A stretch of 63,156 bases of DNA, counting the filler, from Octopus bimaculoides (taxonomy: Eukaryota): the NCBI RefSeq assembly GCF_001194135.2. It is 5 parts of 5 records of this genome, joined end to end, with 100 filler letters (N's around TTAATTAATTAA, not from the genome) between each part and the next. Parts side by side here need not be neighbours in the genome. Positions count along the whole stretch, not along the records: positions 1 to 26,859 come from NC_069002.1; 4 more parts are not named here. One strand, 5' to 3'. Both the position numbers and the translations under genes were made by a program. Below the pieces are notes generated by a model, which ran no database searches, had not been told where the DNA came from, and saw only the letters and a program-made list of their open reading frames with translations. Below are positions 1 through 35,399 of the stretch, piece by piece; within the stretch, counting starts at the first letter, position 1; each line of letters opens with the position of its first letter.

Positions 1-393
1 GTGTGTGTGTGTGTGTGTGTGTGTGTGTGGATCAGCTATAGTTTGTTGTAGTAAGGTGATAGAAATTGCATTAGATGCAACCACAATGCAACAAATGCAA
101 TATACTTTTGCAAAAGCTCTCTGCTGCTACATTCAGTTGTCTTATGTTCCAATGTGGTTATTTATGGTCTCTTAATTGATTAGCATTAATCAGTAGACAT
201 AATATTGATCTGTAGTTTTGGTTTCTTGTAAATGAAGGCCAGTATAGAAAGCTGGGAGTCATTTTGCTGTTGTGTGTAAATATAACGAAGAAATATAAAA
301 TAGCATTTTGACCGTTTCCGCTTTCATTCTCGCTTGTTTTAATTATCTTTTTCTGGGAAATTAATCCAACACACACACACATGCGCGCGCGCA

Positions 394-8800: not shown

Positions 8801-9293
8801 ATCACTGCTTTCGAGTATTAAACATAAATATATGGCACCCCCTCCAGACAAGACCATGGGTCCTTAGCAGCTTTTGTTTAGAAGTGGATTTCAGGACAGT
8901 CCTGTACTCTGACGTATTGATTAGAGTGACATGATTAAAATACAACATACTTTCCATACGAGTGAAGAGATTTCTTTTATGTCTAGATTGTTGTTTATCT
9001 ACAGGTTCTTCAGATGTCAGGTCTGGTTCATTTGCAGGAACCGCTTGACCAGCTTTCGTTTTGTTTTCATCATCAGTTTTCTGAGATTGGTTGCTGTCGG
9101 TGCTGGTGGAGGCAGCGTGTTTCTTAACCGCTGATGTACGAGTGACAAGTGAACGGTACTCAGCCAAGTTATTAAGTGTCTTTATATTAGGATATGGAAC
9201 TGTAACATTTCCTAGGCGTAAAGCAAGAAGTGCATTAAAGTTGGGCGACTCAAAATCCAGTTCTCCTTCGACATCTTCAGATTTTTCCGCCAT
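5895..9293 (-). CDS. LSM11: U7 snRNP-specific Sm-like protein LSm11, 4 coding exons, 298 aa
   Basis: Exons 9293-8951, 8612-8470, 7820-7752 and 6236-5895 total 897 nt, all with GT-AG introns and matching phases (1,0,0). N-terminus LDFESPNFNALLAL...VPYPNIKTLNNLAEY; NLFTRM motif; Sm1 GPLSLLRRCVYEKHRVKVWTRSAGYIRGFCQGFIVAYDKHLNMAMIDVDETFRKP; long acidic insertion; Sm2 QRHVNQLFIRGDSVVSVAIAN-stop. A split Sm fold with this N-terminus is characteristic of LSm11. Confidence 0.95.
6326..6519. mobile_element. Mariner-derived MITE in LSM11 intron 3
   Basis: TIRs TGAGTGGGTGCTTAAAAGTTCCTGGCTTT and AAAGCCAGAAACTTTTCAGCACCCACTCA. Confidence 0.8.
7209..7650 (+). mobile_element. Two tandem copies of an abundant SINE in LSM11 intron 3
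   Basis: Both carry GGCAGAA..TTAG, GAGTTCAAATTCTGCTGA and AAGTACCAGTT..TGGGGTC. The same family occurs at ~12150-12310(-), 12575-12750(-), 18270-18425(-), 20395-20590, 22697-22800, 32483-32705, 43975-44140(-), 58446-58765 and 58785-58957. Confidence 0.85.
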
Positions 9294-9949: not shown

Positions 9950-11268
9950 ATGCCGCCGAAAAAGAAAAAGCAGAAGAAAAAGACGAATTCTCCCAAAGAA
10001 ACAGTGCTTGTCCCCGAGAAGACTCTGAAAGAGACAATTCTAGAGAAACAGTGTGTATTTGTTTATAATCACCATTATTTTATCGATTAGGTTTTAAAAT
10101 GAATTAGTTAACCATTTTATGCTCCATGCATTAAATACGTCAACAATAAATTATCAGAGGATAGAAAATATAGTTCAACATCAGCAAGATTCGAAGTCAG
10201 AAATGTAAAAAGCCGATTTTTTTGTTGTCTAGGGGTGCCATGATTGTGTGGATTAAGAAGTTCAATTTGCTATCCTGTGGTTCCATTTGGAATCCCACTG
10301 GGCAGTACCCTTTGACTTAGAGTCTTAAAAATTTTTTTTTTTTATCACAGCCCCTTCTAATGACTAATATGTTCTGAGGGAAATTTGCCCAGTGGAAATG
10401 GATATATATATATGTATGTATTTGCATGTGCATACATGTAAATGTGTGTGTGTCTTTTATATTTTACTTGTTTCCGTCAATTGAAGAGTTTTAGTCAAAC
10501 AATCGACCCTAGGACTTATTTTTTAAAGCCTAATGCTTATTCTATCGGTGTCTTTTTGCTGAACCTCTAAGTTGCAGGAATGTAAACAAACTAACACTAG
10601 TTGTCTCGTGGTGGTGAGTGACAAACATTCGCACACAGACATAGATATCTACACACACACACACACATATATATATACAATGGGTTTCTTTCAGTTTCCA
10701 TCTACTAAATCCACTAATAAGACTTTGGTCAGCCCAAGGCTGTTGTAGAAGACACAGGTAGTTGGGAAGCCACACCTGCACCTACTAAAACCTGAAATTT
10801 GGTGGGGTGGTGGTGGTGGGGGACTAGTCAGTCTCAGAGACCTGCACCTTGAGTTTCCCATTACTGTGATCTTCAAGCAAACCTGACAAGACAAGATATT
10901 TGTGGTGTTTCTGTATCCTTTGGTGTACATGGGTGGTCCCATGCCACTGCTGGCCGCTTAGATATCTCATTGGTCGTATGGGTTGTAGTTGTGGTATAGT
11001 ATTTGTGGGGGGTGTATTCATTTATGGTGGGTTGGTGACGGATGTATTTATTTATTTTTACTTTTGTTTATTTACTTGGTTAATTTTTGGTTTATGGTAT
11101 TTACCGTGGCATGGTTTGTTCTAATAGAACATCCACGTTTAAGTGGGGATAAATATTACATCTAGAAATACAAAATGACCCACACATACACACAGCTCCA
11201 CAAACCCATACATACATACATACATACATACATACATACATACATACATACATACATACATACATACA

Positions 11269-11299
<31 letters not shown>

Positions 11300-11821
11300 N
11301 NNNNNNNNNNNNNNNNNNNNNNNNNNNNNNNNNNNNNNNNNNNNNNNNNNNNNNNNNNNNNNNNNNNNNNNNNNNNNNNNNNNNNNNNNNNNNNNNNNNN
11401 NNNNNNNNNNNNNNNNNNNNNNNNNNNNNNNNNNNNNNNNNNNNNNNNNNNNNNNNNNNNNNNNNNNNNNNNNNNNNNNNNNNNNNNNNNNNNNNNNNNN
11501 NNNNNNNNNNNNNNNNNNNNNNNNNNNNNNNNNNNNNNNNNNNNNNNNNNNNNNNNNNNNNNNNNNNNNNNNNNNNNNNNNNNNNNNNNNNNNNNNNNNN
11601 NNNNNNNNNNNNNNNNNNNNNNNNNNNNNNNNNNNNNNNNNNNNNNNNNNNNNNNNNNNNNNNNNNNNNNNNNNNNNNNNNNNNNNNNNNNNNNNNNNNN
11701 NNNNNNNNNNNNNNNNNNNNNNNNNNNNNNNNNNNNNNNNNNNNNNNNNNNNNNNNNNNNNNNNNNNNNNNNNNNNNNNNNNNNNNNNNNNNNNNNNNNN
11801 NNNNNNNNNNNNNNNNNNNNN

Positions 11822-11855
<34 letters not shown>

Positions 11856-14800
11856 GTACATCACTTTACATCTGCTTTCTATGCTGGTATGGGTTAGATG
11901 GATCACAATGGTTTGAATTAACTAATATTCAGAAGAGCTGCTCATCCAGGTAGATTAGAGGATCTCCTCTCACTTGTGACGTCTTGGCTTGTATACTCTT
12001 CCTAATGCTAATTACCTTACAGAGTATACAGCGTGTTTTTTTGTTTTCAAACCTTCCAATAAAATTTGAAGTTAATTTATGTTGCAAACACCAGATTAAT
12101 AACGGTTTCACATTTTGGTGCAAGGCTAGTAATTCTGGTGGAGAAAATAAGTTAATTTCATTGACCACCCCCTGCTCAACTCGCACTTATTTTAGTGACC
12201 TCAAAAGGATGAAAGGTAAAGTCAATCTGAATGGAATTTGAACTCAGAATGTAATGATGGACAAAAGTTGTGCTATGCATTTTTGCCTTGTGTGTTAATG
12301 ATTCTGTCAGCTTATCACCTACAACACCAGATTAATAATGACAAAGTTATTTTACTAAATACCTCCTTATTTTCGAAATCAATCAAAACAAAGGCAGTTT
12401 ATTATCACAATTATTCTTGTAATTTTTTTCCATTCTTTCTTCCTTCTATTTCAGTCTGCAAGATATTACAAGACAACTTGAAAAATGCAAGGCCCGAGTA
12501 GCTGAACTGTATCTTTTTTCTTTGTGCATTTTCTATTAAATATTAAAAATTTTTCTCTGGAATATTCTTAGTTACTTACTAATTTGCAGGGTTGGGGTTA
12601 TATCAACCCCAGTATGCAACTAGTACTTATTTTATCCATTCTGAAAGTTTGAAAGGCAAAGTCGACTTCAACAGAATTTGAACTCAGATTGAAAAAATGG
12701 ATGAAATGCTGCAAAGCATTTTGTCTGGTGTGCTAGCAATTCTGCCAGCAAGGCTGCAGTCCAATGACTGAAACAAGCGAAAGATAAAAGATGGTATTTG
12801 TAGCATAGATAACCATCTCTTCTCCCCAGGGTTAAATTGGCTTTTGAAAATTATAACCTTCGTTCTCTAGGATATATGGTAAATGTTCAAGACTTATTTT
12901 AAGGAATAAAAAAAGCAGTGTCCTTGATGTCCAAATTATGTGTAATTTCTAATTTAAAAATGAAACAAATCACTAAAATTTCCTAAGTTTCTCAGACAAT
13001 ATGAAAATACAAGTCTGGAAGATGAAGCCACCAAGACACGGACGGAAAGTGTAAGAATTTTGTTGATGTTTCTTTGTAATCAGTTCCATAAACTTTATTC
13101 ATTTGTTAATCTTTTAATAATTATTTTTATCAATTAGTCAGGAAGAAAGGCCCATGATACTTTATAGGGCCTCTGAAACTGGTGAGAGGGAGGGGGGAAA
13201 GGAAGAGGTAAGATATTTTCAAACCGGGGACCTCACCTAGATACTGGCAACAGAGTGGACTCTGATAAAAGTACCCAAGGACTCTGATAAAAGTACCCAA
13301 GGTGGAATTGGTGGTGTTAAATTTAGTCTTCCACCTGTGTCGGCCTAAGGTGGGATTTGAAGTCAGATTGCAAAGATTCAAAGCAAATACCACAAAAGAT
13401 ATTCAGTCTTTCTGACACCCTAATGATTCTGCCAGTCCAACATGTGCCACTGGTAATTTATTTATCAGTTGAGTGGTTTGGGGCATCAGGGACAGGTGAC
13501 ACCTTTGACAAAGGAATGCCACACACTGCTATCACTGCCACTGCCACCACTTCTACTACATCATCATCATCATCATCATCATCATAAATATTTTAATGTA
13601 CATATGAATATCTATTAAATAGTATTGCATAACCGTTTGTGTGTGCATGCAGTGGGGAGGATGCAAAAGGATGCAATATGTCGAATGCAGTGAATATTAT
13701 ACCTCCCCTGTATGTGTGAAAGGGTGAACATTGTAGACCGACCAGGAAAGCTTCTTGCTGTGTTGTCTTTCAGCATGAATACATGAACTACATGGGGAAG
13801 AAGACGGAGCTGAGGCAGAAGACAGTCGTCACTCTGAATGACCACAACAAAGAACTCTTTCGTGCAATTCAAGAAGAACGAAAGCAGATAGAAGAAAAAT
13901 ATGATGGCCGGAAAAAAGGTAATGTTCTAATGTCTCGTAGGTAAAGGTGAGCTTAGACATTTGTATGAGACCGAGAAAAAAGATAGTTTATCAATATCTT
14001 GTAGGTAATAAGTGCAGGCATGGCTATGGGATAAACATTTTGCTTCCTATCCACATGACCACATGGTTCTGGGTTCAGTCTCACTGTGTGGCATCTCTTG
14101 TCAAACGTCTTCTACTATAAGCTTGAGTTGACCAAAGCCTTGTGAAGGGATTTGGCAGACAGAAACTGAACGAAGCCTGTCATATGTATGTATGTATCTT
14201 GTGTAGTTAATCATTTAAATTCTTCCTCTGAAGAAGACTGAGCTGGTTTCTAACAAAGATACAAAGCTCCATCTTTGGAATGTTGATAACAAAAAACAAC
14301 AACACATTTTAAACCTGAGAAAAGTCTTGCAGAGTTTTACTGTTCCGCTTACAGACTGCATTTGTGATGTGTGAATCAGTTGGTTGACTTCTTTTTCTGG
14401 AAATCTAAGCTCATCATTTGACAACCAGTGTTTGTTTGTTTACATTCATGTAACTTAGTGGTTCAGCAAAAGATACCAATAGAGTAAGTGCTGGGGTTGA
14501 TTTTTCAACTAAAATCTTCAAGGCTTCAGGTCTCCAGCAGTCCATATCAATGAATTACAGAAACAATAAATTTATAAGTAAATAATTTGTCATCAACTAC
14601 AGTGTAGAATTTTAATCCTTTAACTTCAAAATTAAATTTTATGGTTATTCTAGTAATCATGTTAACTATCTTCCCGAAAAAATAGAATTGGTATTTTCTG
14701 CAAGTCACATTGCCTCAGTAAACTTGACGTATTTCATCAGAAATTAGTTTCAAACAAGATATTTCTCAACAAAAGATTAGATTGGTCTATAAAATTGCTG

Positions 14801-17800
14801 TCCACAGTTAAGGGTAATGAAATTTTGAGCGGCTACATTGGATTTCTACAGTAAAAGGGTTGAGGCATGTGGAATGGAGAGTCGCTGAAGAGGTGACAGG
14901 CTGTGTGATGAAAGATTTCCAGACAAAGGACACTAAAACAAGAATAATAATTCAGCTGAAGTGAAGACCAAATATATGGTGTATGTGGTAATTGGCAAAA
15001 AATGGTTTGTAGTTTTAAAGGCACGAAATAAAGTTGCTTTTATGTTGAGTTGCAATTGGGAACAACTAGTCGGATCATTCAGTTGTAATCACGTGTTGAC
15101 TCTGCCGATCCCTCGCTAGCTAGGACTACTGCACATGACTTGCTTTGCCTACAGACCCCATAAGAAAGAGGATGACTTGACCTGTCACTTGTGGATGTGA
15201 TGTCATCTCATCCCTTTCTGGTCCCTTTGCATCCTGTTTTTTTGCAACGTCTCTCTTTCTCCCTTCCAGTCAATTACCCTTCCACCACAATATGACCATC
15301 CCCAAATACAGCCAAAAATGAAATTCATTGAGACTAAATTAGTAAATATTGTTTCTTAAATCTATTCTGGTATTTTATCACTTGAAATGTTTAAATGTCC
15401 TTTTTTGCAGATCTTGAAACGGTTCTTTTGGCAAAGAGACATGTTCTTCATCAAACGAAAAAAGAAATGGATGCCCTCCAAGAAAGTAAGGTATTAGAAT
15501 AATTTTACCCATTTCTTTTGAAAATAATAGGTAACAATCTCACTATAAAGGGTTATTTTCTTGGCCTGTTTTCAGTGGGTTTTAACTCTTTTATTGCCAT
15601 ATTCCAAGGCTGTAGTAAAAGACACTTGCCCAAGGTGCTCACACAGTGGAACTGAACCTGAAACCATGTGATTGGGAAGTGATACATTTTTGACTTTTAT
15701 TTATTTCTTTTTTTGGCCCTTGCAAATGCTATTTCAGAATTTATATTTTGCTGTGTTCCAATCCTAGTTTCTCCAAGAGGAACAGTTGAAAAGAATCACT
15801 GAACTTGAAAAGGAAATAATCGAAATCAGAAACCATCATGCATTGAGTGTTGAAGAATTGAAAGAGAAATACATAGATGAGAAAATGAAGTTTCGTATGG
15901 AGGCAGACGAAAAAATCCGTGTGCTTACCAAAGAGGCAAATGAGGTAAGTTCTCACTAATTAAATGGATTACTGATTCTCTAGTTGACAGAGATTCATCA
16001 TCATTGTTGTTCTTGTCACCACCACCAAAATGCCTGTTTAAAAACAAAAAAGTGCTATAGTTGTCAGAAGCTGGGACACAGGAGTTCTCATTGTAGACAA
16101 GACTCAAACACAAAAAGTTCTAAGGTGTTTTCAGTGGAGAGGGATTGCGACAGATAAACAAGAAAATTTGTGCACATAAAAATAAATGATGTGAATATCA
16201 AATTCTGTAAAAGGTATGTGATTAAGTATATTTTCACTCCATCCTACCACCTGAGGTCAAACGGGCTGGTAGAAAGGTTTGTGGACACCTTTAAAAGTGT
16301 GTGAAGAAAAGCGAGGAATTAAGTAATGATGAAGCACTGACAAATTTCTTAAGAGTTTACAGAGTGACCCCCAATCCAAGTAGAAATTCAGGGAAGTCTC
16401 CCTCAGAATTGATGTTCACAAGAAGAATGAAATTCATTTTTGATAAGCTATTACTAGGGGAAAAAAGACATAAAGGAAATACAAAACTAGCAAGATTAAT
16501 GCAGGAGAAAGAAGTCTAGGAGTAGAGAATGATGGTGTCCATCTGCAAACGATGTGGTAGGGAGACAGAGAGGGAAAGTAGAGTGGAGCCAGAAAGAAAG
16601 ATAAAGAAGGTGATGACGAAATGGCAGAATGTAGTCTCAAGGTACAAGAAGGTGAGTAGAAGAGAGTGTAGGCTCAGGAAGGGATGTTGTAAGATTTTGT
16701 GAGGGGAGTCAAAGATGGTTGTTGTTCAGAAATGGTAGCACAGTATAGCACATAGTCTATATTATATCTGTTCAGTGCTTAGTTGTTTTTTTTTATGTTG
16801 TGTTAGATTTATAAACCTTCAAGTTTTGTTTTGTATGTCTGTATGTTTTTCTAATCATTTCCAAAACATTATTATTTATGTGAGGTTAATGCACTGGTTC
16901 TCAACACTGGTTCTCAATATGATCATTGGGGTCCATATAAGATTTCGTCGTTAAAATTTATCTGCAATAAAATGGTTATACTTCTACAATGCATAAAATA
17001 TTAAAAAATTTTTTTTATATAATTTTGAATTATAAAAATATAATAAGATTTTTTTAAACATCAAATGGCCATGAGGATCCAACCAAGTAAAATAAGAATC
17101 GAAGGGGTCTAAAGGTAAAAACTGGGTTAAAAGTATGAAAAAAAAAGGGAGATTCATGGCTATTTTACATTATTATTATAGGGGGCTATGGATTAGTAGT
17201 AGTATCTATAGAGTATCAGGCAAAATGACTGGTGGTATTCGTTCTGGCTTTTTACATTTCTAAGTTCAAATCCTACTGATTCCAACTTTGCCTGTCATCC
17301 TTCCAGGGTCAATGAAATAAAGGATCAGTTAAGATCACTTTAATCCTTTAGCTTTCAGATTATCCTCTCAAGTGTAATACTTATTTGTTCACATTGTTTT
17401 GAATTAATCATGCATTAATCTTGTAGCTTTGACATTTTGTTGATATGGTTGTTCATTTTGATAATGACATTGTAGAGCAGGTATGAAAGATTGGATATGG
17501 CCAGTTTGAACATAAAACTAGTAGAATATTTTGGCTGGATATGGCTGGTTTAAACGTTAAAGGGTTAATCAACTAACCCCCACCCCTTTCTTGTAAATTT
17601 CTGGCCAAAGTTAGAAATCAGTAATATTTAATCTTTTATGTTTTTCAATGCAGGAAGCCAGGAAGCATTTGGTTCAATATGCTGAGATGATAAAGAATGA
17701 AAACAGATCTTTGAGGAGACAACTTAAATCTTTGATTGTAAGCAACCGTGCACTTCTGGATCATCGGCAGCGACTGGAAGAACAACATAAGACACTTGCT

Positions 17801-17956
17801 TGGAAATTACAATATGCTGAAGACATGAAGTCTTTACATAGAAGACGTTTAAACAAAGCCTCTTATCTCAACAATGACTCCACTAGCATTCTGGATGACT
17901 TGGTGAATTCTAAAAGTATAGCTCTGAAGAAACTTTATGCTGAAACAAATCCTTGA
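9950..17956 (+). CDS. CCDC166: CCDC166-like (DUF4515 family) coiled-coil protein, 7 coding exons, 304 aa
   Basis: Exons 9950-10050, 12455-12508, 12996-13050, 13774-13918, 15411-15490, 15768-15944 and 17654-17956 total 915 nt, GT-AG with consistent phases (2,2,0,1,0,0). Basic start MPPKKKKQKKK, then heptad-rich segments HEYMNYMGKKTELRQKTVVTLNDHN, LQEEQLKRITELEKEIIEIRNHH and EARKHLVQYAEMIKNENRSLRRQL that recall CCDC166. The exon 1 and 2 donors (gtgtgt, gtatct) are weak. Family call from recalled similarity; CCDC121 is a related alternative. Confidence 0.82.
14015..14195 (+). mobile_element. tRNA-derived SINE, second family
   Basis: GCAGGCATGGCTATGGG...GGGTTCAGTCTCACTG...ACCAAAGCCTTGTGA..GATTTGGCAGACAGAAACTGAA..AAGCC followed by a (TATG)n tail. 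Related pieces at ~7852-7990, 10480-10760(-), 18905-19090, 28760-28830 and 34070-34107. Confidence 0.75.
16040..16800 (+). mobile_element. Gypsy/Ty3 LTR-retrotransposon remnant in CCDC166-like intron 6
   Basis: Gag zinc knuckle CYSCQKLGHRSSHC (~16052-16093) and integrase C-terminus YHLRSNGLVERFVDTFK...FLRVYRVTPN..SGKSPSELMF. Confidence 0.8.
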
Positions 17957-20089
17957 TATCTTTGGCTTTATTTCAAGCTTCCATGTATATAACTTTACTG
18001 TTTCTCCACTTAAAATGTCATTAATGGTAGATTGAGACAGCTTTTTTTAGTGACTGCATTCTAAGGCAACTTTAGTTTTAACATGGTTTATTTCATGGAG
18101 ATTCTCAACTTTGTTCTACCAAACAGTAAATTATCAGGATCACAATTGAGTGTGCTTTGTTTATTTTTGAAATTTCATCATTCTATTGTATACCACCATG
18201 TCTACAAGAGTTAACTCTTTCATCTAGCACAGTGATTTCCAACCATTTTTTATCTATGGACTTCTGTGATTTCTATTTACATCGACCCTAGTACTCAACT
18301 GGTACTTATTTTATTGATCCCGAAAGGATTAAGAGCAAAGCTGATCTTGGCAGAATTTGAACTCAGCACATGTAAATGCCATTAATCATTTTGCCTGATG
18401 TGCTAATGATTCTGCCATCTTGCCTTTTATATATGTATGTATGTATGTACACATACACACACATACACATACACACACACACATACACACGTGTGTGTGT
18501 AAGAGAGAAAAATCTTATGTTTGTATGAGTGTAGGTGTGCATGTCTCACTTAATTCTTAATCCATTCAGTTCTGGAACCAACAAGTAATTAAATGTAACT
18601 GACTGGATTATAGCTACACCAAGAGAAACTACCGAGTGATATCAGATTTTATAGATTTAGCTCTGAGATTACATTTACCAGCTGTGGCACTGTTACATTA
18701 TATGTTAACATGGTTCTCCCTGCTATAAAAACACGATAAATTCAGAATGAAAACAATTAAAAAATATGTAATAGTTTTGTGAGCATGGCCCACAGTAGCC
18801 GTTGAAAAGCCTCTAAGGCCAGGAAAATCCTTGAAGCAGCTGAGAAATATTCTTTAGTCTGTAATTGCATTATTCATTGAACTGGCATGAATTGGCGGGA
18901 ATTGGTGTGAATTGGCATGGCTGTGGGGTTAAGAAGTTTCTGTCCCGTCTATGTTGTCTTGAGTTCCGTCCCAATGTGTGGCATGTTAGGCAGATGTTTT
19001 CTACCACAACTCCGGGCTGGCCAAAGCCTTGTGAGTGGATTTGGTAGACGAAAACTGAAAGAAGCCCACTATGTATGTATGTAAGCATGCATGTATGTGT
19101 GTGTGTGTGTGTGGGTTTGTGTGCACATCTATGCGTGTGTGTTTTGTGTTTTCCCTCACCATTGCTTCTATATTATAATAGAGAAAGCTGCTTATTAATT
19201 AATTATGTAACAGTTACTAAAACAAAGCAATTATTAAAGGTTTGACTGTCTGGAAAGTTTTTTATAAATTCATGTTCCAAGAAATTTCCTGTAATTTTGA
19301 TTTCTGAAGCTTACTGAATATTTGAATGACAAGTTTTTCACAAAATTTGAATATTCATTGTCTTATTTTTGTTTTCATTGGTGTTTTCAATTTTTTTGAC
19401 TGCTTTTGTTTTTCATTTGGCTTTTTGTTGTTGTTGTTGTTGTTGTGGTTGTCCTTACTTTGATTGGTATTGGTGGGATAGTAGTGATGTGGATGGTAGG
19501 AATGGTGGGACGTCATTATGGAAACAGATGTTCCAATCTCTGGTTTAACATCTTTGGCAATTTGCCAAACAATTTGACACTTTTATTTTTGTTTAATGTG
19601 TAGATTTTTAGAAAATAAAAACAATACAAAGAAACATTGAATAAATAACTTACAAACATCATCTGATCCTGGGACATATAAGTTCTACAAGAAACGTGGG
19701 GAGGTGAAGGGCCTTATACAATATATAAATAGATAAGTTAAAATTTGTCAAGTACTGGGCCCACAGCAAATAAAATAATTAAAACGAAATTAAACACGAA
19801 AGCTGTTGTGGTTCACATCTCTACGATAAGTGCAAAAGATTGTTTTAATTGGTGTGTTATGTGTATTGGGAAGGACATTGTCACTGCGAGAACGATTGCT
19901 GCCTGTGTGTGGTTAATTATATTTCTACATCCAATCGATGTATACAGCGAGTTTCTTTGCCCTAAGCAACAGGAAGACACTCGGCAAAGAAATGGAAAGA
20001 TAATTGAAGGAAAAAGAACTACTACTACTACTACTACTACTAGTAACAACAACAACAACGACAACAACAATAATAATAATAATAATGAT

Positions 20090-20375
20090 TTCTTTTATTT
20101 GCTACCAGGGCGAAGGATGAGGGGGCGCAATACAAAGACAGACAAAGGGTGTGTGTGTGTGCTTTTTCCAACTTCTTTCCTCCGACTCACAGGTCTACAC
20201 TGAGAGTGCTATCATCCACTCTTGCCATTTTCACAACTTTCATCTGCCTTTTGATAAATTCACTCGAGGACAGCTCCTCCCTCACTTTCCTTTTCAAGTG
20301 AAACTTGAAAAACATCGATGAGGGCTTTACCAAAGAGGAATGTCTTTGTCCTCGTTCCTTTCAGCCTCTTTTGCC
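20090..20375 (-). mobile_element. 3' fragment of a Tx1/L1-like LINE
   Basis: The reverse complement matches 60230-60300 (GACATTCCTCTT..GTTTCACTTGAAAAG). The 3' end abuts an (AAT)n run. Confidence 0.75.
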
Positions 20376-20609
20376 ACAGCCATAGAATCATTAGTACGAT
20401 GGGCGGCAAAACGCTTAGCGGCATTTCGTCCGTTTTTACGTTCTGAGTTAAAATTCCACCAAGGTGGACTTTGCCTTTCATCCTTTCAGGGTCAATAAAT
20501 TAGGTACCAGTCAAGTAGTGGGGTCAATGTGATTGACTTACCTCTTCCCCACAAATTTCAGGCCTTTTGCCTATTGTAGAAAGGATTATCATCATCATCA
20601 TCATCATCA

Positions 20610-21149
20610 TCATTGAATGAGAGAGTAGTGCATGCCAGCAAAGTGACACGGGGGTAAAATATACAAAGCCCAATATACCCATCATGACTGGCCGTCTGAT
20701 AAGGCCCATGCATCACAACCATATGTGTGCAATATGGTGGTCTCATATCAAGATAAACAGCACATGACCTTGCAGGTGGGGCCCAGTTAGAATTTACTTC
20801 AGGTCGAGTAGCCCATCCTGCTCAAAGGGTCCTTGAATAAGGTTTGCTTAAGGATGTTGAATGAAACACCCATGTTTCTTGAGGTGAATTATCCAAACCC
20901 CAAAGAATTCCTCTCAACACATGGCTATGATGCTCCCCCACTGCTTCTGCTCGTGATCAGAGATGCACATATCGTCAGCCACCAAGGGACATGCTCATCT
21001 GGTTAAGGTCAAACAACTGACAAACAAATCTGTGGTATTGAGCAGAATATTTGCTGTAGCTCATCTTTTTATACCAATGTACATGATAACACTTCCAATC
21101 AATTCAGATCAGAAGCCATGAGAGCCACAGCCTGGTGCTGCATCAGGGA

Positions 21150-21150
<1 letters not shown>
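20610..21150 (-). mobile_element. ~550-bp interspersed repeat bounded by trinucleotide runs (three copies)
   Basis: Homologous full copies at 34740-35295(+) and 44160-44700(+) share GATGGGCTACAGCAAATATTC, GTTGAGAGGAATTCTTTGG and GTACCCTTATCAGA. Class not determined. Confidence 0.8.
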
Positions 21151-21183
<33 letters not shown>

Positions 21184-22167
21184 TCATATATGCGTAAGAA
21201 GAATTTCCTACCACTAGGCTACAAGTAACAGATGCCAAGAACCTTCCTAAGTATCCCAGCTGACTCTAATAATACTTTTTTTCTGGAGCTGCACTGCTCC
21301 CTTTATCCATCTGTTCAAATCTTTTGGGATAGTTCCTGATGCACCCTATAACTACTGGGTTACATTTTACCCGCACTTTCTTCCATAGCCTCTATAATTT
21401 AATGGCTGGGGCCTGGTACTTTGCTATTTCCTTTATCATACCTCTTATATTGACCTTCTTCTTCTTCTTCTTCTTCTTCTTCTTCTTCTTCTTCTTCTTC
21501 TTCTTCTTCTTCTTCTTCTTCTTCTTCTTCTTCTTCTTCTTCTTCTTCTTCTTCTTCTTCNNNNNNNNNNNNNNNNNNNNNNNNNNNNNNNNNNNNNNNN
21601 NNNNNNNNNNNNNNNNNNNNNNNNNNNNNNNNNNNNNNNNNNNNNNNNNNNNNNNNNNNNNNNNNNNNNNNNNNNNNNNNNNNNNNNNNNNNNNNNNNNN
21701 NNNNNNNNNNNNNNNNNNNNNNNNNNNNNNNNNNNNNNNNNNNNNNNNNNNNNNNNNNNNNNNNNNNNNNNNNNNNNNNNNNNNNNNNNNNNNNNNNNNN
21801 NNNNNNNNNNNNNNNNNNNNNNNNNNNNNNNNNNNNNNNNNNNNNNNNNNNNNNNNNNNNNNNNNNNNNNNNNNNNNNNNNNNNNNNNNNNNNNNNNNNN
21901 NNNNNNNNNNNNNNNNNNNNNNNNNNNNNNNNNNNNNNNNNNNNNNNNNNNNNNNNNNNNNNNNNNNNNNNNNNNNNNNNNNNNNNNNNNNNNNNNNNNN
22001 NNNNNNNNNNNNNTTATATAAAGCTCATCAGCTGACTCCAGCTTTTCATCAGAAAAATATACAGAAGACTTCAGATACACATATCGTTATAAACACATCT
22101 TAAAATAATGACTGACTATAAAAAGTAAGTAATGTTTAAATTATTCTCTATGGTTGTATGTGGACCA

Positions 22168-22209
<42 letters not shown>

Positions 22210-22211
<2 letters not shown>

Positions 22212-22625
22212 CCTTTCTTTATTAGCCACAAGGGCCGACAAAAATAAGATTAGACATTATAAAACATGAAGAGCAAAGTGGAGTTACATAGAGTGTCGTG
22301 TAAAAAGTCAATGACAATGAAAGATATAACAAAGAAAATTCCTAAAATAGGCAAGCAACACTGGACTACTCATGGAGACCCCACGAAAAATCCACAAGCG
22401 CCACGACCACAACCCTCTCCCCACCTATCTTTCTCTCTCTCAGCCTTGGAAACTCAAAAGCACATGCTCACTTTCCTTTTCAGAAAAGTTGATGAAGGGT
22501 AGGCCAAAGAGAAAAGGATTTGTCTTCAGCCCTTTCAGTCCAAACTACCACACAACCTCTTTCACTACGGCCATGGAGCAGATGAAAATTGCCTTCCCTT
22601 ACTGACCAAAGGAAGGGAAATCTTC
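22210..22625 (-). mobile_element. 3' fragment of a Tx1/L1-like LINE
   Basis: The reverse complement resembles 60160-60300 (GAAAGAGGTTG..GGACTGAAAGG..GAAAAGGAAAGTGAG). Adjacent to (AAT)n. Confidence 0.7.
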
Positions 22626-22956
22626 ATGATGGAATCAGCCGACACATAAATTCATATATCAGATATGCTCGGGTACTGGATGAGTGGATGCAGAAAGACG
22701 GCGAGCTGGCAGAAGCGTTAGCACACCGGGCGAAATCTGTCTTTACGTTCTGAGTTCAAATTACGCCGAGGTCGACTTAGCCTTTCATTCTCTGTGTTTG
22801 TAAAATTATGAAAGTACTTGTACATGTATTTGCATACATATGTGTATATATGCATGTGCACACACATACACAGACACACACACATGCGCATGCACACATA
22901 CATCTGTATATACTGATATTTGATTTTTTCCCATTTCCAGTTTCAACAAGTGCACA

Positions 22957-25900
22957 ATGAAGATTATCCTTGGTGTCTACTTCTGTGCTCTTTCATACGC
23001 AATGTCCCTTAACAAGGGTAGGTACTCGCTATACACAATACTCTATAGTAAACAAATGGAAGAAGAGTTGAGGGAGAAGATGAAGGAGAAATGAAGAGAA
23101 CTGATTGGCATTGTCTTTGTTCTTTTTCTATGAAGACAACTCAATTCAGAGGAAGACTGTCGGTGCAGCAGATTACCCCTCCCCCATTCAGATTACCTCT
23201 TGGTGACTTGAAATAGTGTTCAGATTAGGATGAAATAGATTTCAAATTACCCCAGCTTAGCGAGGAAGGGAATTTTGGACATCCTGCCAGATTAAAAACA
23301 AAATCAGACAGGGATTCGTGGCCATGTGATTGGTTGGCTAAAATTTACCCTCAAACAACCCCCAGTCTTTGTTCCATAGGCATGCTGCTTCCTCTCACTG
23401 TTTTTCTCACTGCTACTATTAGGGACTCTGTTCCTAAAGCTAGCTGTTCCCATGCAACCCACACTTAGAATGTTTGGCCTTGGGAACTCTTTCTCTGCTC
23501 ATGTTTTTTCAGCAATAGTTTAAACAGAATATTAACTGTATGAACCTCATCGATCCAAAAGGTCTATGAAAGCTATGGGCACTATACTTTTCTCAAGACC
23601 CAGCAAGTTAATATATATATATATATATATATATAAAAACAGGGGTTTATCTTTATTTGTGAATTTCCACAGGTTTGCCTATAACTCATGATTATTCATA
23701 ATTTTTGTATCTCCTAATCATTGAAATTAAATATATTCTGTTATAAGATTTCATCCATTGGGATCATCATATCGCCTTCAGGAAATATGAAATATATCTT
23801 CCAACTGTGACCATTCTGTCTGCATTTTACGAGCAAGAAATATATTATGTATTGGTCATTAGAATATCCGCCGAGTGTACTTGCTTAATTTACATATTCT
23901 TAGGCACGACTTCGTTAAAACGAATTGTAATTCTTGGATATAATTTTTTATCTCATTTCCAGATGCCGCTACAGTTGATAATTCACTACAAGTTGCAAAC
24001 ACAGGTTTGGAAGAAAGGTAAAATTATATACTTACAATTGCTTTAGATGTGTATTGCTCAAATAATTATTCTGAAACTTTTGTTAAATTTTACTGTTGTA
24101 TGCACATTTTATTTTCATGTGTGCAGCACATACCGTACCTCTTGTCATAAAAGTAAAAAAAAAAGAAAAATGGGTGGATTAACTTATATGCCAAGACGAT
24201 TTTGGAGGACCAAAAATTGCCTGTGAAATAGACAAATAGACATTACTCTATATACTTTTATATATNNNNNNNNNNNNNNNNNNNNNNNNNNNNNNNNNNN
24301 NNNNNNNNNNNNNNNNNNNNNNNNNNNNNNNNNNNNNNNNNNNNNNNNNNNNNNNNNNNNNNNNNNNNNNNNNNNNNNNNNNNNNNNNNNNNNNNNNNNN
24401 NNNNNNNNNNNNNNNNNNNNNNNNATAAGCAGAGGCACCCAGCGTTGTCCAGGAATGAAATTATTCCTTATATATTGGAAGAAAAAAGCAAAATATGTTG
24501 TATAGAAATTTGTTTTTCTAAATTCAATTTATTCTTCAATTGGAAAATCAATTCTGGATTCATAACACAAAAATAATAATAATGATGATAATAAAAAACG
24601 AAAAATTCGATCCTATGCACAGTGTTGTGGAAAAAGTTTAGGTTCATGTTCATTCACAAATGCAGCCAAGTTGGTGATGTCATAATTTGTCTCTTTTGCT
24701 ATGTCTCTTGAAGTTAAATCACTAATTTAACAGTTTGTTTTTGGCAGTCCAGAGCCAGACTCTTGCAAATTTTTGCCTCCCATGGCCAAAACTTGATCCT
24801 CAATTTCAATTAGGGCTTAGTTAAAAATTGATTCAGATGATTAAATATTGATATCTGGGTTTGCCTGTTGAACTGCATACTTTAAGTCCTCAACCATATC
24901 CTCTTGATGTTTCATCCAAAGCTGTAGGGGACTGCTAAGTTGACACATGTTCAGTCGAATTGCAAAACGGTTACAGAATTCTCTTTGAGAATCTGATACT
25001 GATGCTTCAGTCAATGCAAGGTCCCAATACCCATCATTTTGTAGAAAGACCTTGTTGATAGCATGCTTCCCTATAAGTTTCACACACATGACCATTTACC
25101 CTCCTCGAATCTTGGAATGATTTGGGACCATGTACTTCATGCAAAAGGAGCCATAAGTAGTAGCATTCTGCTTGGCTTGGGGGGTGGGGGCACACTAAAC
25201 TCTTGCAAGAACGTCAGCCTGTTTCCTCTTATGCCATTTATTGTTTCCCCAGGTGTAATACTTGGGTAATTGTGGGTAAAGGAGTTTTCTTGCATGTTCA
25301 TCTACTTGACACAACTTAAAAAGCCAGTAAAGGTAGTTTCTTTTGGAGAAAGTGCTTGTTGCAAGGCTGTTGGCTTTGTAAAGATAACCCTGTGGCCATA
25401 CTCTAGATGGACACTCAATGAACGATTGCTGGGTGCCTCTCATGAATGGGAAAATTGAAGATGCACGAAAAAGTCTCATGTCTGATGTGAATATCTTTCT
25501 GAAAATCAAAGAGAAAGAAGACAACTACAGACAACTGTTTTGAAACCTCTAGCTTCTACGTCTGGATTACAAATTTACATTTATACAAATAATAATTGGT
25601 TCACTTGATTTTCTAAGTAAATAACGAATTGTCAGTTTGGATAAGTCTGGATTTTCAGAAAAGAAAATCAACCGACTCACACATTATAAATACAATCTGA
25701 AAGCGGAAAAGTAAAACTTTGCAAGACTTTTCTCGGGTTTAAAATATGACGTTGCTTTCGTTATCTGCATTCCAAAGATGGAGCTTTGTATCTTCGTCAG
25801 AAAGTAGTTCCTTCTTCAAAGAAAGAATTTATAGAACTAAAAACAAAAGATAACATACTTGCATAATACATACATACATACATACATACATACATACATA

Positions 25901-26381
25901 CATACATACATGCATACATACATACGTGCATGCATACATGCATACATACATACATGCATACATGCATACATGCATACATACATACACACATAAATACATA
26001 CATAAATACATACATACATACATACATATGTATTATATGCATTATGTACACATGTACATTTATATAGATACATGTGAGTGTATGCATGTACACAAAATTT
26101 GTCAGGACGTATGCAGATCATTTTGTGGAAATTTTTTTTCCAAACTTTAATAACTGTGAATAGTTACGAGTTTATTGTTAAATACAAATGGTTTATTCTT
26201 GCTTTCAATGTTCTTTATTTACAGAAGCGAAAAGTGTGTTAAATGGAATTATCTTTGTGGTCCTCCCGGAAAAAAAACCTACCCTCCTTGTTGTTCTAAT
26301 TATTACTGTCGATGCAACAGTTTTTGGAAAACAACGTGCCGATGTCATGGATCGAGTTTAGGTTCTTTGCAAGGCTGTTAG
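22957..26381 (+). CDS. Secreted inhibitor-cystine-knot (agatoxin-like) peptide precursor, 3 coding exons, 90 aa
   Basis: Exons 22957-23017 (acceptor at 22940 implies a further 5'UTR exon; donor G|gtaggt), 23963-24017 (tttccag|...AG|gtaaaa) and 26225-26381 (tttacag|...TAG) total 273 nt, phases 1 and 2 match. Protein MKIILGVYFCALSYAMSLNK-DAATVDNSLQVANTGLEER-SEKCVKWNYLCGPPGKKTYPPCCSNYYCRCNSFWKTTCRCHGSSLGSLQGC. Framework C-x6-C-x10-CC-x4-C-x-C-x7-C-x-C-x10-C. Confidence 0.88.
24660..25540 (-). mobile_element. Helitron Rep/helicase fragment in intron of the knottin gene
   Basis: FKLCQVDEHARKLLYPQLPKYYTW..KWHKRKQ and LQNDGYWDLALTEASVSDS...CQLSSPLQLWMKHQEDMVED are typical Helitron RepHel linker motifs; the frame is broken. 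Confidence 0.8.
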
Positions 26382-26859
26382 TCATGAGGAACAAAAGAGA
26401 ATCGAACCCGTTTTGTTCTATTCCTGTTTCTTTTTTTATTTACTTGTCATCTTTATTTTCCTTTCTTGTGTCTTGAAGAAATATTCTCTAAAATGTCAAC
26501 TTTCGCTTAAATTACTTTGCTTTTATGTTTTGTTCCTCGTTTACGTCAGTGCTTCTCAATTGTGTGACCCCCCCCCCTACAAGGTTCTGGGTTGCATATG
26601 TTTACAATCAACAGGGATTTCATAAATCTGTCGTTTCAAACAATATACTGAACTAGTTTTCTGCCTTTCTTTGTTTTTCAAATACATTAAATGTTAACAT
26701 AGTCAAATACACATTACACTTTTTAATACACTGTGTGACAGATGCTGCATAATCTATTACAAATTAAATTGTTTAAATGTAGGAACAAAAAACAGAAATA
26801 TAGTGTAGCGGCTTCCAAAAAGGGATATTTTCATTTCGAATGGAAGAGAAGAAAAAATA

Positions 26860-30816: not shown

Positions 30817-33800
30817 ATCCTTCCCCCAAAAACGAAGAAAAGATAAGAAAAATAACAACGCCAGTACGTGGTACATGCAAAGTATATAGACGAATGGGTT
30901 TACTACAATCGTTCCGTTAAGAGTATTATTATGATGTAGGCATAGTACAGTTAGGTATGCAGTCTGCACAACGTCTAGAAGTTTATGTAATACGTTTGCA
31001 ATTCTCAACTCATCAGGCGAACCAAATAACCAAGCAGCAGTGACATTTTGAATAATCAACGTATCATCAAGAGAAATTTTGAATCAGAGTTCTCAACATA
31101 TAAGAAATGTAAATTTGGTGGGATTACAAACTGTTAAACAAGGGTGGTTAGTAGAATGAGATTGTTGAGGAACAGTTGCAGTGATTTTTTCTCTTAATAT
31201 GTCATTAACCCTAGCAACTATGTTCATAAAGGTTGGTAATGTCAGAGTATGTTTGTATACCGATAGGCAGTAGGCGCCAAACATGACATTCGACACTCGA
31301 CACTTGTTCACAGACCAGCTGGTGACACTGCTAAAAAGAAAAATATTTTCAGTGTTATTTAGTTTTAAATTTTACTACATTGTGGTGTGGCATGGCTAAT
31401 AAATTCCAGCGTTACCTACTCCTTTTCTTAATAAGTCTTCATAAAAATGCTCCGATTAATTCTTAAAGGAACTGATAGAATATTAGATATAACTACTGGA
31501 AATCTTGCCAATTATAACCAGGGAATGTAACTCAAGGAAAACCTCAGATTAAGAAATCCCTGTAAAAATTCAGAGAAGGAAAAAAAAAGTAGGATGCAGA
31601 GAAAAAGGAAAGAAATGATAAAAACAGAATAGGATAAATCAAATGCAGAGAATTGATCAACACGTTGACAGCAATACAGTAATTGGCATAAACAAATAAT
31701 TTTGCGTCCTAGACTAATGAAAGTTGTGTAAATAATAATCAGTGTCAACTTAGAGATATCATTTTATGAATTTACAAATTTATGTTGAGTTAAATATCGA
31801 AATTTACTGATATCAGTTATTTATCTGCGAGGTGAGAAGATAATAATAAAAAAAGTAAAAACATAGCCAAGTTTCACGCTAAAGAAAGAAAACAAAAACA
31901 AAATGAGAAAATTATAATCCTTGTACGTCAACCAACAGACATTGTGACAATATTATTTAGAATGAAATAAATCAGTTAAAATCATACTGATTCAGTGGAC
32001 AGCTAAAACACTACCATAAAAATTAAAAGTTCTGGCGAGTAATAAGTGAGAAGAGTTTATAAGGATTATAAAAATATTACTAAGGTCATTAATGTTAAAA
32101 GAATCTGTAGGATTATAACGAATTATAAAGGAACTAGATATGAAGATACAAATATTATGAACATATCACTTAAAACTAGAAGCAAACTGAAAAAAGTTAT
32201 TAAGTTAAATCACATCAAGTATAGATCACGTAAAATTACAGTCATCGATATTTGTAGTTAAGACGAAACAACCCCGCTCTCCGCATAATTTTTAATTACT
32301 ATAGTAGTGATATGATCTTTCTGCTTAATCCGTATGGTTCAAACTTACCAGTAATAGAAACGTTGGGATTCATGTTTTCTTCGGTTTATATTGGAAATAT
32401 TGGTTCTGTTTCCTCTTCTTTGTCAGCTATCAAATTCTTAAGAAATATATAACTGACCTCTCTCAATTTCAGTAATGACATATGGCGATTAGCTGTCGTA
32501 GACGATGGCACACCGGGCAAAATGATTAGCAGTATTTCGTCCCTCATCACAGTTTATATTAAAAGATCCACCAAAGTCGACTTTGTCTTTTATCCTTTTT
32601 GGGGTCGATTAAATGTACCAGTTGAACCCTAGGGGTCTATGTGATCTACTTAGCTCCGCTCCCGAAGTCGCTGGCCTTGCGCCAAAATTTGTAGCCAGCA
32701 TTTAACTGATATATATTATCTTTTATGTTGTCACTGTCTATAGCTTAAACTACTGACATTAATCTAATATTCACATTTAATTGTTCGTCTATACCAAGGC
32801 TGTCTTCACCTCAACTGTGTTGCAAACTTTGTATATTAGATTCATCCTATTCTCTTTCTATTTAAGTTTTTATAGGTTACGCTTACTGGCAATTTAATTA
32901 TGGTAATCTCTCTATTTTAATTTTCTTTCCCTTTCTTTTCACATTTCCTCCTTTTTCTTTCGCTCTTCTCTGAAATTTCGTAGAGATCAACGTCATTCTC
33001 CCTGTTTTTGCCCTAAGTTATTTTTCAAGAAAAGTAATTAGCTGGATCTTTCTTAATTAAAGATAATATTCTATTAGTGCTGCAATAATTAATCGGAACA
33101 CTCTCACCAAGAGGAATCAAGTAAACCATGTCAAAACTTTGATAGACTAAACATTATAAAACACTAAGCTCTTTTAGAACAACGTCGGCAGAGATCTTCC
33201 ATAAGGTCGTGATGAGGTCAAATGTCATGCTTGGCCCCTGCTATCTACTAATATATAAGTCTGTTGTGAAAGTTTCAAATTTTATGGGCGATGTCTTTAA
33301 GTTTAATGACATCTTTAGTATAGAAATACTTTTTAACTGTTCTATAATTGACCACCTCATTTTACAATGCACCCTCGTGATTGACTGATTGTAGTCTTAC
33401 TGTATGTTTCATAAATATTGGTGATTCTGATTCAAAATTTCATTCGTTCCTTCATCAGCATCTCACTGCGAGCTTGTATATTTGCAAAGCCTCGACGAGT
33501 TGAGAACTGCGTAACCTATTGCATAATCTAATGGATGTTGTGCTTACTACATACCTGACTACACAACGTTTACACCACAATAAAAACTCATACTGAAACA
33601 ATTGTCGTAGTAACAGAAAATCCTTTCAGCTCTTTTTATTATGTTTTACGCCACACTTAAGATTCCGTTTATGTTGGGATAACATTGGAGTTGCAAATTA
33701 CTAAAGAACCCGCCCCTCTAAACATTTCATACAATGATACTGGATTACTTATTTAACGGTTTAATTTGCTGTAAATAAAAGGATAGAAGGCAAAGTCACC

Positions 33801-33900
33801 TTCGGTGGATGTAGAAATTAGAATGGAACGCCGGAAGAAATACCACAAAGCACTTCGGCGCGCACGGTAACGATTCTAATTCCTTGCCGTTTTTATAATG

Positions 33901-33992
<92 letters not shown>

Positions 33993-33993
33993 T

Positions 33994-34069
<76 letters not shown>

Positions 34070-34692
34070 GGCGACGGAGTGGCTGTGTGGTAAGTAGCTT
34101 GCTTACCNNNNNNNNNNNNNNNNNNNNNNNNNNNNNNNNNNNNNNNNNNNNNNNNNNNNNNNNNNNNNNNNNNNNNNNNNNNNNNNNNNNNNNNNNNNNN
34201 NNNNNNNNNNNNNNNNNNNNNNNNNNNNNNNNNNNNNNNNNNNNNNNNNNNNNNNNNNNNNNNNNNNNNNNNNNNNNNNNNNNNNNNNNNNNNNNNNNNN
34301 NNNNNNNNNNNNNNNNNNNNNNNNNNNNNNNNNNNNNNNNNNNNNNNNNNNNNNNNNNNNNNNNNNNNNNNNNNNNNNNNNNNNNNNNNNNNNNNNNNNN
34401 NNNNNNNNNNNNNNNNNNNNNNNNNNNNNNNNNNNNNNNNNNNNNNNNNNNNNNNNNNNNNNNNNNNNNNNNNNNNNNNNNNNNNNNNNNNNNNNNNNNN
34501 NNNNNNNNNNNNNNNNNNNNNNNNNNNNNNNNNNNNNNNNNNNNNNNNNNNNNNNNNNNNNNNNNNNNNNNNNNNNNNNNNNNNNNNNNNNNNNNNNNNN
34601 NNNNNNNNNNNNNNNNNNNNNNNNNNNNNNNNNNNNNNNNNNNNNNNNNNNNNNNNNNNNNNNNNNNNNNNNNNNNNNNNGTTTTTATAATG

Positions 34693-34736
<44 letters not shown>

Positions 34737-35399
34737 TATGTTTGATGCAGTAAGTACTAGGCAGTGGCTTTCATTTAATCTTAACTGATTGCATGTGTTA
34801 TCAAGTACACTGTTTTGTTTTGGTATAAAAGGTGGGCTACAGCAAATATTCGGGTCCATACCACAGATTTGCTACTCAGTTACTTGACCATAAGCAGCTG
34901 AGCATGTTCTTTAGTGGCTGATGACATGTGCGTCTCTGATCATGAGCAGAAGTAGTGGGTGAGGGGTATCATAGCCATGTATTGAGAGGAATTCTTTGGG
35001 ATTTGAATAATTCACCTCTGGAAACACGGGTGTTTTGTTCATCATACTTAAACAAGCCTTATTCAGTGACCTATTGAGCAGGATGGGCTACTCAACCTGA
35101 AGAAATTTCTAACTGTGCCCCATCCGCAAGGTCATGCGTAGTTTACCTTGATATAAGATCCCCATGTCGCGTAGATATGGTTGTGATGCTTGTGCCTAGT
35201 GTACCCTTATCAGACGGGTAGTTATGATGGGTATATTTGGTTTCGTATATTTTACCCCAGTGTCACTTTGATGCCGTGCGCGCTCTCTCACTCAATAATA
35301 ATAATAATAATAATAATGACAATAATAATATTTTTTTTATTTATTTTATTTTCATGTATCTTTTTTTAACCACTAATCTTCATACGGGGGCCGCATTTA

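Follow-up and report, generated by a model that had tools for sequence, protein, structure and literature searches.

What kind of peptide is made by a small gene in the genome of Octopus bimaculoides whose product looks like a spider toxin in its cysteines and like a neuropeptide in its precursor? The gene lies on the plus strand of a 63,156-nt stretch of O. bimaculoides DNA (hereafter, the window), where three small coding exons between positions 22941 and 26381 join into the precursor of a secreted cystine-knot peptide. An earlier, sequence-only reading of the window had proposed this three-exon gene and had left open whether its agatoxin-like product is a venom or salivary component, a neuropeptide or a defence peptide. 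We identified the gene as LOC128250540, which probably encodes a prepropeptide of the CCWamide/agatoxin-like peptide (ALP) family and would be a fast-diverging, lineage-specific paralogue that has diverged most in the exon for the mature peptide.

The gene model is correct and corresponds to a real, annotated gene of O. bimaculoides. When joined, positions 22957-23017, 23963-24017 and 26225-26381 form a 273-nt coding sequence that is in frame throughout and encodes 90 residues and a TAG stop; the precursor reads MKIILGVYFCALSYAMSLNKDAATVDNSLQVANTGLEERSEKCVKWNYLCGPPGKKTYPPCCSNYYCRCNSFWKTTCRCHGSSLGSLQGC, followed by the stop codon. The product matches UniProt A0A0L8G4S4 from the same species with 100% identity over 100% of its length, so the spliced gene proposed from the sequence is confirmed at its positions. 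The implication that the gene had been missed was wrong, as the model was already present in both UniProt, under the name ‘Agouti domain-containing protein’, and RefSeq, where LOC128250540 encodes the same product with 11 additional N-terminal residues (XP_052831767.1, ‘uncharacterized protein’, 101 residues). Positions 12108-26859 matched CM046622.1:37.29-37.31 Mb (GCA_001194135.2) with 0 mismatches, including the runs of N. The cysteine framework, searched as C-x6-C-x(4-12)-CC-x4-CxC-x(5-8)-CxC, turned up once among the six translated frames of the window and in none of 200 shuffles. Scans by tBLASTn and by regular expression, which covered the window and the 10 kb downstream of it, detected no further knottin exon. 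Exact-sequence look-ups of the 90-residue product and of two paralogue isoforms returned no contigs, only the longest RefSeq products being on record.

As the sequence-only reading had suggested, each module of the precursor has its own exon. Coding exon 1 (22941-23017, acceptor 22940/22941, conserved start ATG at 22957) encodes the signal peptide MKIILGVYFCALSYA(MS), the residues LNK and the first base of Asp21, after which a phase-1 intron follows. Coding exon 2 (23963-24017) encodes the propeptide DAATVDNSLQVANTGLEE and the AG of Arg39 and is followed by a phase-2 intron, which places the codon AG|A across 24017/26225. Coding exon 3 (26225-26381) contributes the last base of Arg39, the knottin of the mature region (26226-26378) and the TAG (26379-26381). 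Both introns are of the GT-AG type, with the donors GTAGGT in intron 1 and GTAAAA in intron 2, and both acceptors consist of a pyrimidine tract and AG.

Intron 2 contains a non-coding assembly gap of 159 N (24266-24424), which is also present in the chromosome-level assembly. It starts 249 nt past the donor of exon 2 and lies 1.8 kb ahead of the acceptor of exon 3, and no coding base is affected. The join between these two exons does not depend on the gap, because together they complete the Arg codon AG|A, as they do in the paralogue LOC128250511. It is also supported because its position and phase are those of the conserved intron of the family (PMC8557429) and because colinearity from the basic site to the Cys domain holds in the relatives, those derived from transcripts among them. 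It is possible that a micro-exon is concealed in the gap, but all of the relatives are colinear and none has an added segment at that place.

Residues 2-12 of the precursor form a hydrophobic core, and there are -3/-1 sites behind residues 15 and 17; next come an acidic spacer of 22-24 residues, Arg39 and a Cys-rich C-terminal region of 51 residues. This mature region (SEKC...LQGC) carries a charge of +6, has an isoelectric point (pI) of 8.95 and is rich in aromatic residues. It consists of an eight-Cys knottin core, C-x6-C-x10-CC-x4-CxC-x7-CxC, with F72 and W73 in the Cys6-Cys7 loop, and of a ninth Cys that is the last residue, Cys90. The sequence-only reading gave this core framework accurately and overlooked Cys90, so that the mature peptide has nine cysteines and not eight. 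It had also taken the LEER at the end of the propeptide for the processing quadruplet of spider toxins; the pattern does fit, but the Arg is simply the basic residue at the split codon that is conserved in the family. We know of no octopus protease for a spider-type processing quadruplet. The C-terminus, ...HGSSLGSLQGC-stop, lacks a terminal Gly or basic amidation signal. In the family alignment, ...HGSSLG is aligned with the ancestral ...R-LG-stop, and the tail SLQGC therefore extends past the former amidation site.

Several lines of evidence place this precursor in the CCWamide/ALP family. The spiralian CCWamides were previously described as orthologues of the arthropod ALPs and of U8-agatoxin, with eight Cys, an aromatic residue between Cys6 and Cys7, an amidated aromatic C-terminus and genes of three coding exons in which a phase-2 intron falls within the codon of a basic residue ahead of the mature peptide (PMC8557429). 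In a phmmer search against 1.84e9 representatives, the top relative was LOC128250511 (P0002; E 3e-18), and CCWamide precursors of oyster, Sinanodonta, the nemertean Lineus and canonical octopus genes came next (E 4e-5 to 4e-4). Using hhalign, the group of nine-Cys octopus peptides aligned with canonical CCWamide/ALP sequences with a probability of 97.9% (E 3.4e-13). The eight Cys columns, the loop lengths, the W after Cys1 and the CxCN-xW motif all match in an alignment of more than 30 family members. The kinship with agatoxin-type knots and arthropod agatoxin-like peptides suggested by the sequence-only reading therefore holds, on the strength of the phmmer and hhalign results, the matches to spider inhibitor cystine knot (ICK) toxins and the gene structure.

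The sequence and gene-structure features of the family are nearly all present: the precursor layout, the spacing of the eight Cys, the three coding exons, the phase-2 split codon and significant sequence similarity. The nearest members are the type-A molluscan CCWamides (LOC106867751, oyster and Sinanodonta), which have the same succession of signal peptide, non-conserved propeptide and C-terminal peptide. Across CCWamide/ALP precursors, the framework is likewise C-x6-C-x10-CC-x4-CxC-x6/7-CxC with Cys1 followed by W and with an aromatic residue in the Cys6-Cys7 loop, and the genes share the three coding exons and the phase-2 intron in a basic-residue codon. The amidated aromatic C-terminus is the one such feature that the window peptide does not have. 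It ends without an amidated aromatic or aliphatic residue, runs five residues past the ...LG end and finishes in the ninth Cys. In addition, its Cys6-Cys7 loop is one residue longer, the dibasic site after the split Arg (R-G-[KR]-x-[KR] in the relatives) is lost, and the gene is one of four or more octopus-only genes with a hyperdivergent mature exon.

The sequence-only reading had considered one-to-one orthology with a brain-type neuropeptide. This is not what we found, as other genes encode the canonical octopus CCWamides: type A is Ocbimv22001854, that is, LOC106867751 (P0007/P0012), ending in ...CRCDDTLG, and type B is octopusVulgaris.32202, ending in ...CRCVNKLWGG. The window gene is therefore a divergent paralogue. 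Its sequence does not occur in the text of the PMC8557429 sequence collections, as far as that text is accessible. Its closest relative, LOC128250511, is found on the same chromosome at a distance of 8.1 Mb, flanked by LOC128250510 (P0017) and LOC128250512 (P0018). These three genes belong to a tandem knottin cluster, LOC128250512, LOC128250510 and LOC128250511, at CM046622.1:29150904-29186003 (locus L002), in which genes occupy positions 1-698 (+), 6054-8380 (-), 10001-25100 (+) and 33221-35100 (+). All four divergent genes (LOC128250540, LOC128250510, LOC128250511 and LOC128250512) encode the eight-Cys core, have no amidation signal and carry at least one more Cys in a C-terminal extension; the gap from the CxC motif to the extra Cys differs from gene to gene (x6, x10, x12 and x16). 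They were seen only in O. bimaculoides in a collection of 5.8e9 protein clusters. A word-seeded protein search with the window precursor alone returned only the precursor itself, and alignment-seeded searches returned only the O. bimaculoides paralogues and canonical CCWamides, with no orthologue from O. sinensis, O. vulgaris or squid. Such orthologues may have gone undetected through missed annotation of small genes and not through true absence.

Three side observations concern the cluster. The small gene that starts at 33221 has a similar signal peptide start, MKSLSVLLFCVFVSYTFS, and continues past the edge of the locus. In the RefSeq product of LOC128250512, the last 28 residues, which follow the ninth Cys, are strongly hydrophobic (AIIAMHNYICILICLLAFLLHVVWTFYM, L002 591-698) and could either anchor a knottin in the membrane or result from reading through a splice or polyadenylation site that was not recognised. 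The LOC128250510 product likewise has a long C-terminal extension that contains Cys.

The comparison with LOC128250511, a single gene pair, indicates where the divergence has occurred. In the signal and propeptide region, 25/39 residues are identical, with a nonsynonymous divergence (dN) of 0.20 and a synonymous divergence (dS) of 0.64. In the mature region, identity falls to 19/51 residues, or 10/42 at non-Cys positions, and dN is 0.60-0.87 (about 0.6-0.9); dS is saturated in this exon (proportion of synonymous differences 0.78-0.87), and hence no formal omega is given. DNA identity is 78% for the exon taken as 5′ untranslated region (5′UTR), 81% for exon 1 with its flanks and 67.5% for exon 2 together with some 350 nt of the intron sequence next to it. 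For exon 3 and the 3′UTR, DNA similarity is not above that of shuffled controls (z 1.1 and 1.2), and the 27 nt directly before the exon-3 acceptor are colinear, with 22/27 identical (z 7.3). The pI of the mature peptide differs as well (8.95 in the window peptide and 5.58 in LOC128250511). By these comparisons, change has been far more rapid in the mature-peptide exon than elsewhere in the gene, the surrounding introns included. The mode of evolution, as distinct from homology, resembles that of conotoxin-type superfamilies, which have the same conserved signal peptide, propeptide and introns and a mature exon beyond recognition at the DNA level; for the window gene, this contrast comes from one gene pair. 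In some immune effectors, too, the modules for secretion and processing are conserved and the mature exon is hyperdivergent.

Other observations weigh against a fast-diverging prepropeptide of this family. The same pattern of divergence could have arisen if exons had been exchanged or if the 5′ half of the gene had undergone gene conversion. Two Pfam families scored below their gathering cut-offs, Toxin_7 (PF05980) with 18.7 bits against 27 (E 0.002) and Toxin_9 (PF02819) with 11.6 bits against 21.3; the canonical octopus CCWamide passes Toxin_9 with 25.1 bits. Neighbour joining on the 37-residue core did not give a resolved tree, the clade of the window gene receiving 18% bootstrap, and for this reason the proposal that the four genes form one subfamily rests on their shared derived features and on the similarity of their signal peptides and propeptides. 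None of the four divergent genes has a transcript-derived (Logan) protein in the collection searched, whereas the canonical CCWamides do (P0011 and P0014), and their expression may therefore be low or restricted. The processing of the precursor is also less clear than in its relatives: a lone Arg after Glu-Glu is a weak site for prohormone convertases, so the propeptide may stay attached, and the odd number of cysteines could reflect a free thiol or some other pairing in place of an intermolecular bond.

The predicted fold is compatible with a knottin. An AlphaFold2 model of the mature peptide (pLDDT 71.5) has the expected β-hairpin, formed by residues 26-30 and 38-42, and the tail (residues 46-51) is disordered, with a pLDDT below 50. 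The top Foldseek match was Magi3 (6ax2; probability 0.87, TM 0.53-0.58), which was non-significant with an E-value of 0.16 or worse, and the further matches were other knottins, including tachystatins, none of them significant by E-value. Sequence searches of the PDB returned spider ICK toxins only (best E 0.017-0.46), namely Magi3/mu-hexatoxin-Mg2a, Tbo-IT2, purotoxin-1, omega-Aga-IVA/IVB, delta-palutoxin and mu-Aga-I. Besides Magi3, omega-Tbo-IT1 and omega-Aga-IVB stand near the top of the Foldseek and PDB sequence matches. The window peptide shares the Cys framework and the CxC...W..CRC motifs with spider ICK toxins such as U8-agatoxin, Magi3, omega-Tbo-IT1 and omega-agatoxin IVA/IVB, and its precursor shares the Glu-Glu-Arg end of the propeptide. 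It differs in that it is molluscan and not chelicerate and scores below the Pfam gathering thresholds. It also differs from Magi3 and from the ten-Cys CCWamides of nemerteans, in which the extra Cys has a partner.

The UniProt name raises another question, namely whether the gene is a molluscan member of the Agouti/AgRP family, encoding an antagonist-type ligand of G-protein-coupled receptors. The name is probably rule-based, but other features point the same way: a C-terminal Cys follows the CxC motif, as in Agouti, the common knottin core CC...CxC...CxC is shared, with a C-terminal loop closed by a final Cys, and 6ax2 is the best PDB match outside the respective family for both the AgRP domain and the window peptide. 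Nevertheless, the Agouti/AgRP domain has ten Cys (C-x6-C-x6-CC-x2-C-x2-CxC-x6-CxC-x6..9-C) and an RFF loop, and the window peptide has neither. Its nine cysteines include a CC-x4-CxC loop without the cysteine of CC-x2-C, the partner of the last Cys in AgRP, and where AgRP has the RFF triplet of its receptor-binding loop, the loop of the window peptide reads NSFWKTT. The Pfam Agouti profile (PF05039) gave no match at E<=10, and no AgRP or ASIP chain was found among the PDB matches. The hhalign probability against Agouti was 18.5%, which is no better than the 14.6% obtained with canonical CCWamides (the AgRP reference sequence was checked against PDB 1HYK). We rejected membership of the Agouti/AgRP family on the Cys pattern, the missing RFF and the Pfam, PDB and hhalign results, and consider it extremely improbable; the name is best read as reflecting a generic knottin resemblance. 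As a separate observation, some nemertean CCWamide paralogues (Lineus lacteus comp12621; ...CCDECYKCKC...CTCQKKMFSCWGKR) have the full ten-Cys Agouti/Magi3 framework, CC-x2-C-x2-CxC...CxC-x6-C (PMC8557429, supplementary file 26), and an Agouti-like ten-Cys pattern therefore exists inside the protostome CCWamide/ALP family.

These features allow a pathway from precursor to secreted peptide to be proposed. The signal peptide of 15-17 residues would be removed co-translationally after Ala15 or Ser17, and the product would enter the secretory pathway. By analogy with agatoxins, the eight core Cys would then fold oxidatively into an ICK with the pairs C1-C4, C2-C5, C3-C8 and C6-C7. The acidic propeptide could be cut at Arg39, although this step is uncertain because the dibasic site of the relatives has been lost in the window gene. 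Cys90 would most plausibly form an intermolecular disulfide, in a dimer or with a covalent partner, because the octopus peptides have an Agouti-like last Cys without its partner Cys. The expected product is a secreted basic knottin of about 5.7 kDa with a pI of about 9, perhaps a dimer linked through Cys90, that would act as a diffusible extracellular ligand on a membrane receptor or an ion channel.

What such a ligand does can be approached from several sides. Family membership and precursor architecture fit an endogenous neuro- or endocrine signal, that is, a sub- or neofunctionalised CCWamide paralogue released from neurons or gland cells that would act on the CCWamide/ALP receptor or on a duplicate of it. 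In animals that have no venom, ALPs and CCWamides are peptides of neuroendocrine or peripheral tissues (PMC8557429), and the oyster CCWamide is expressed chiefly in the digestive gland (PMC8398477); the receptor of the family is unknown (PMC8557429, PMC13311285). However, the amidated aromatic C-terminal residue that the family conserves, and that is presumably important in receptor binding, has been lost, and the mature sequence is poorly conserved between paralogues. Both are unusual for a ligand constrained by its receptor, and we regard a signalling role as possible, though less likely than not. The same rapid divergence is what one would expect of a venom or salivary toxin, if the knottin family had been recruited to the posterior or anterior salivary glands and diversified there under prey-driven selection. 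The lineage-restricted expansion, the conotoxin-type combination of conserved signal and propeptide with a hyperdivergent mature exon, the charge shifts between paralogues and the insecticidal spider toxins as best structural and sequence relatives all agree with this, and spiders recruited toxins such as U8-agatoxin from this very family (PMC8557429; PMC13311285).

Two observations count against the toxin interpretation. The accessible part of a 2026 survey of cephalopod salivary-gland secretomes, which includes O. bimaculoides, does not contain the terms agatoxin, knottin, ICK or cystine-knot. In the same part of its text, this preprint groups short secreted proteins that have no known function into 27 superfamilies, and its list of molluscan neuropeptides used as queries does not include CCWamide. 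Moreover, the protein collection holds no transcript-derived copies of the divergent genes despite public RNA-seq of the posterior salivary gland, a weak negative as regards high expression. A toxin role is unlikely in our view, and it is more doubtful still that a CCWamide/ALP gene turned independently in octopus into fast-diversifying, possibly disulfide-dimerising knottins of a salivary venom. The cationic, aromatic-rich mature peptide would also suit a host-defence knottin, antimicrobial or chitin-binding, like the tachystatins of horseshoe crabs. Tachystatins A and B are indeed among the fold matches, such ICK peptides can be antimicrobial and bind chitin (PMC8984021), and rapid diversification fits immune effectors too, but the tachystatin matches are non-significant (E 1.9-9) and the closest paralogue is acidic (pI 5.58), which makes a defence role improbable. 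The remaining probability is spread over other roles. Whichever role applies, a prepropeptide of the CCWamide/ALP family is how we read the gene.

The sequence-only reading had placed the start of the gene at 22941, which is the splice acceptor of coding exon 1; a further 5′ exon lies upstream and ends at 22124. This exon (22075-22124, +, with a provisional 5′ end) has the donor GTAAGT at 22125. It contains an in-frame ATG at 22108, the start used by RefSeq XP_052831767.1 (MTDYKN...), and positions 22075-22146 show 78% DNA identity with the 5′ exon region of LOC128250511. In the three isoforms of LOC128250511, the peptides read upstream of the conserved MKIILG start are wholly different. Because the upstream peptide is not conserved in these isoforms despite the DNA identity, we took the 5′ exon as 5′UTR; it is most likely untranslated, with 22957 as the true start. 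The signal peptide looks functional from either start (22108 or 22957). The TATA-box-like sequence TATATAAAG (22015-22023, +), read from the sequence, is a candidate core promoter; it directly follows an assembly gap (21561-22013) and lies about 85-95 nt 5′ of the ATG at 22108. At the other end, two ATTAAA polyadenylation-like hexamers at 26686 and 26763 (26686-26768, +), 305 and 382 nt past the stop, are candidate signals.

The surroundings of the gene contain other coding sequences and repeats. Its upstream neighbour (12108-17956, +) is a DUF4515 coiled-coil gene with an annotated product of 304 residues; its last exon, an open reading frame (ORF) spanning 17648-17956, resembles the C-terminal portion of the DUF4515 profile (E 8e-4). 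The downstream neighbour (L001 17683-20784, about 3.3 kb past the window’s end) is a single uninterrupted ORF of 3.1 kb that encodes 1033 residues with importin-11/exportin domains, and it looks like an intronless copy, possibly retroposed. An ORF of 163 residues at 8802-9293 (-), with an ATG start and a Ser/Thr/Glu/Lys-rich product without a significant Pfam match, could be an opposite-strand exon or a small gene upstream of or within the DUF4515 gene region. Within intron 2, in the interval 24600-25524, two minus-strand ORFs (24841-25095, 84 residues; 25195-25524, 109 residues) match no Pfam family, are not repeated in L002 and look like a decayed mobile-element coding region. A short interspersed repeat at 22695-22791, between the 5′ exon and coding exon 1, has several copies in L002, on both strands, with 74-92% identity. 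Microsatellites were found at 11207-11298 ((CATA)23), 21455-21560 ((CTT)35), 22169-22211 ((TAA)14) and 25853-26028 ((ACAT)44), the last of these 200 nt 5′ of the mature-peptide exon. The (CATA)23 and (CTT)35 arrays abut the gaps at 11300-11821 and 21561-22013, respectively, which suggests that long simple repeats cause the gaps.

Finally, the gene model and the family are already known, the latter in octopus as well. Literature searches for the gene and protein identifiers gave no matches, and we found no description in the literature of LOC128250540 and its three relatives as an octopus-restricted CCWamide/ALP subgroup. We propose such a subgroup on the features of the predicted peptides, which would be C-terminally extended, non-amidated and odd in their number of cysteines, with a hyperdivergent mature exon. 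We also propose that ‘CCWamide/agatoxin-like peptide paralogue’ replace the UniProt name ‘Agouti domain-containing protein’ and the RefSeq name ‘uncharacterized protein’. From a biological perspective, the CCWamide/ALP family is a textbook case of the recruitment of a neuropeptide as a toxin, and its receptor and function are unknown in any animal. The octopus paralogues keep the knottin core and the gene structure, lose the amidated end and gain an unpaired Cys, and they represent a natural experiment on the re-use of a hormone scaffold. If they are salivary, they would be the first cystine-knot toxins of cephalopod venom and a molluscan parallel to spiders, the ancestral gene having been recruited independently for a second time. 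A neural or endocrine role would instead make them a new branch of peptide signalling in cephalopods.

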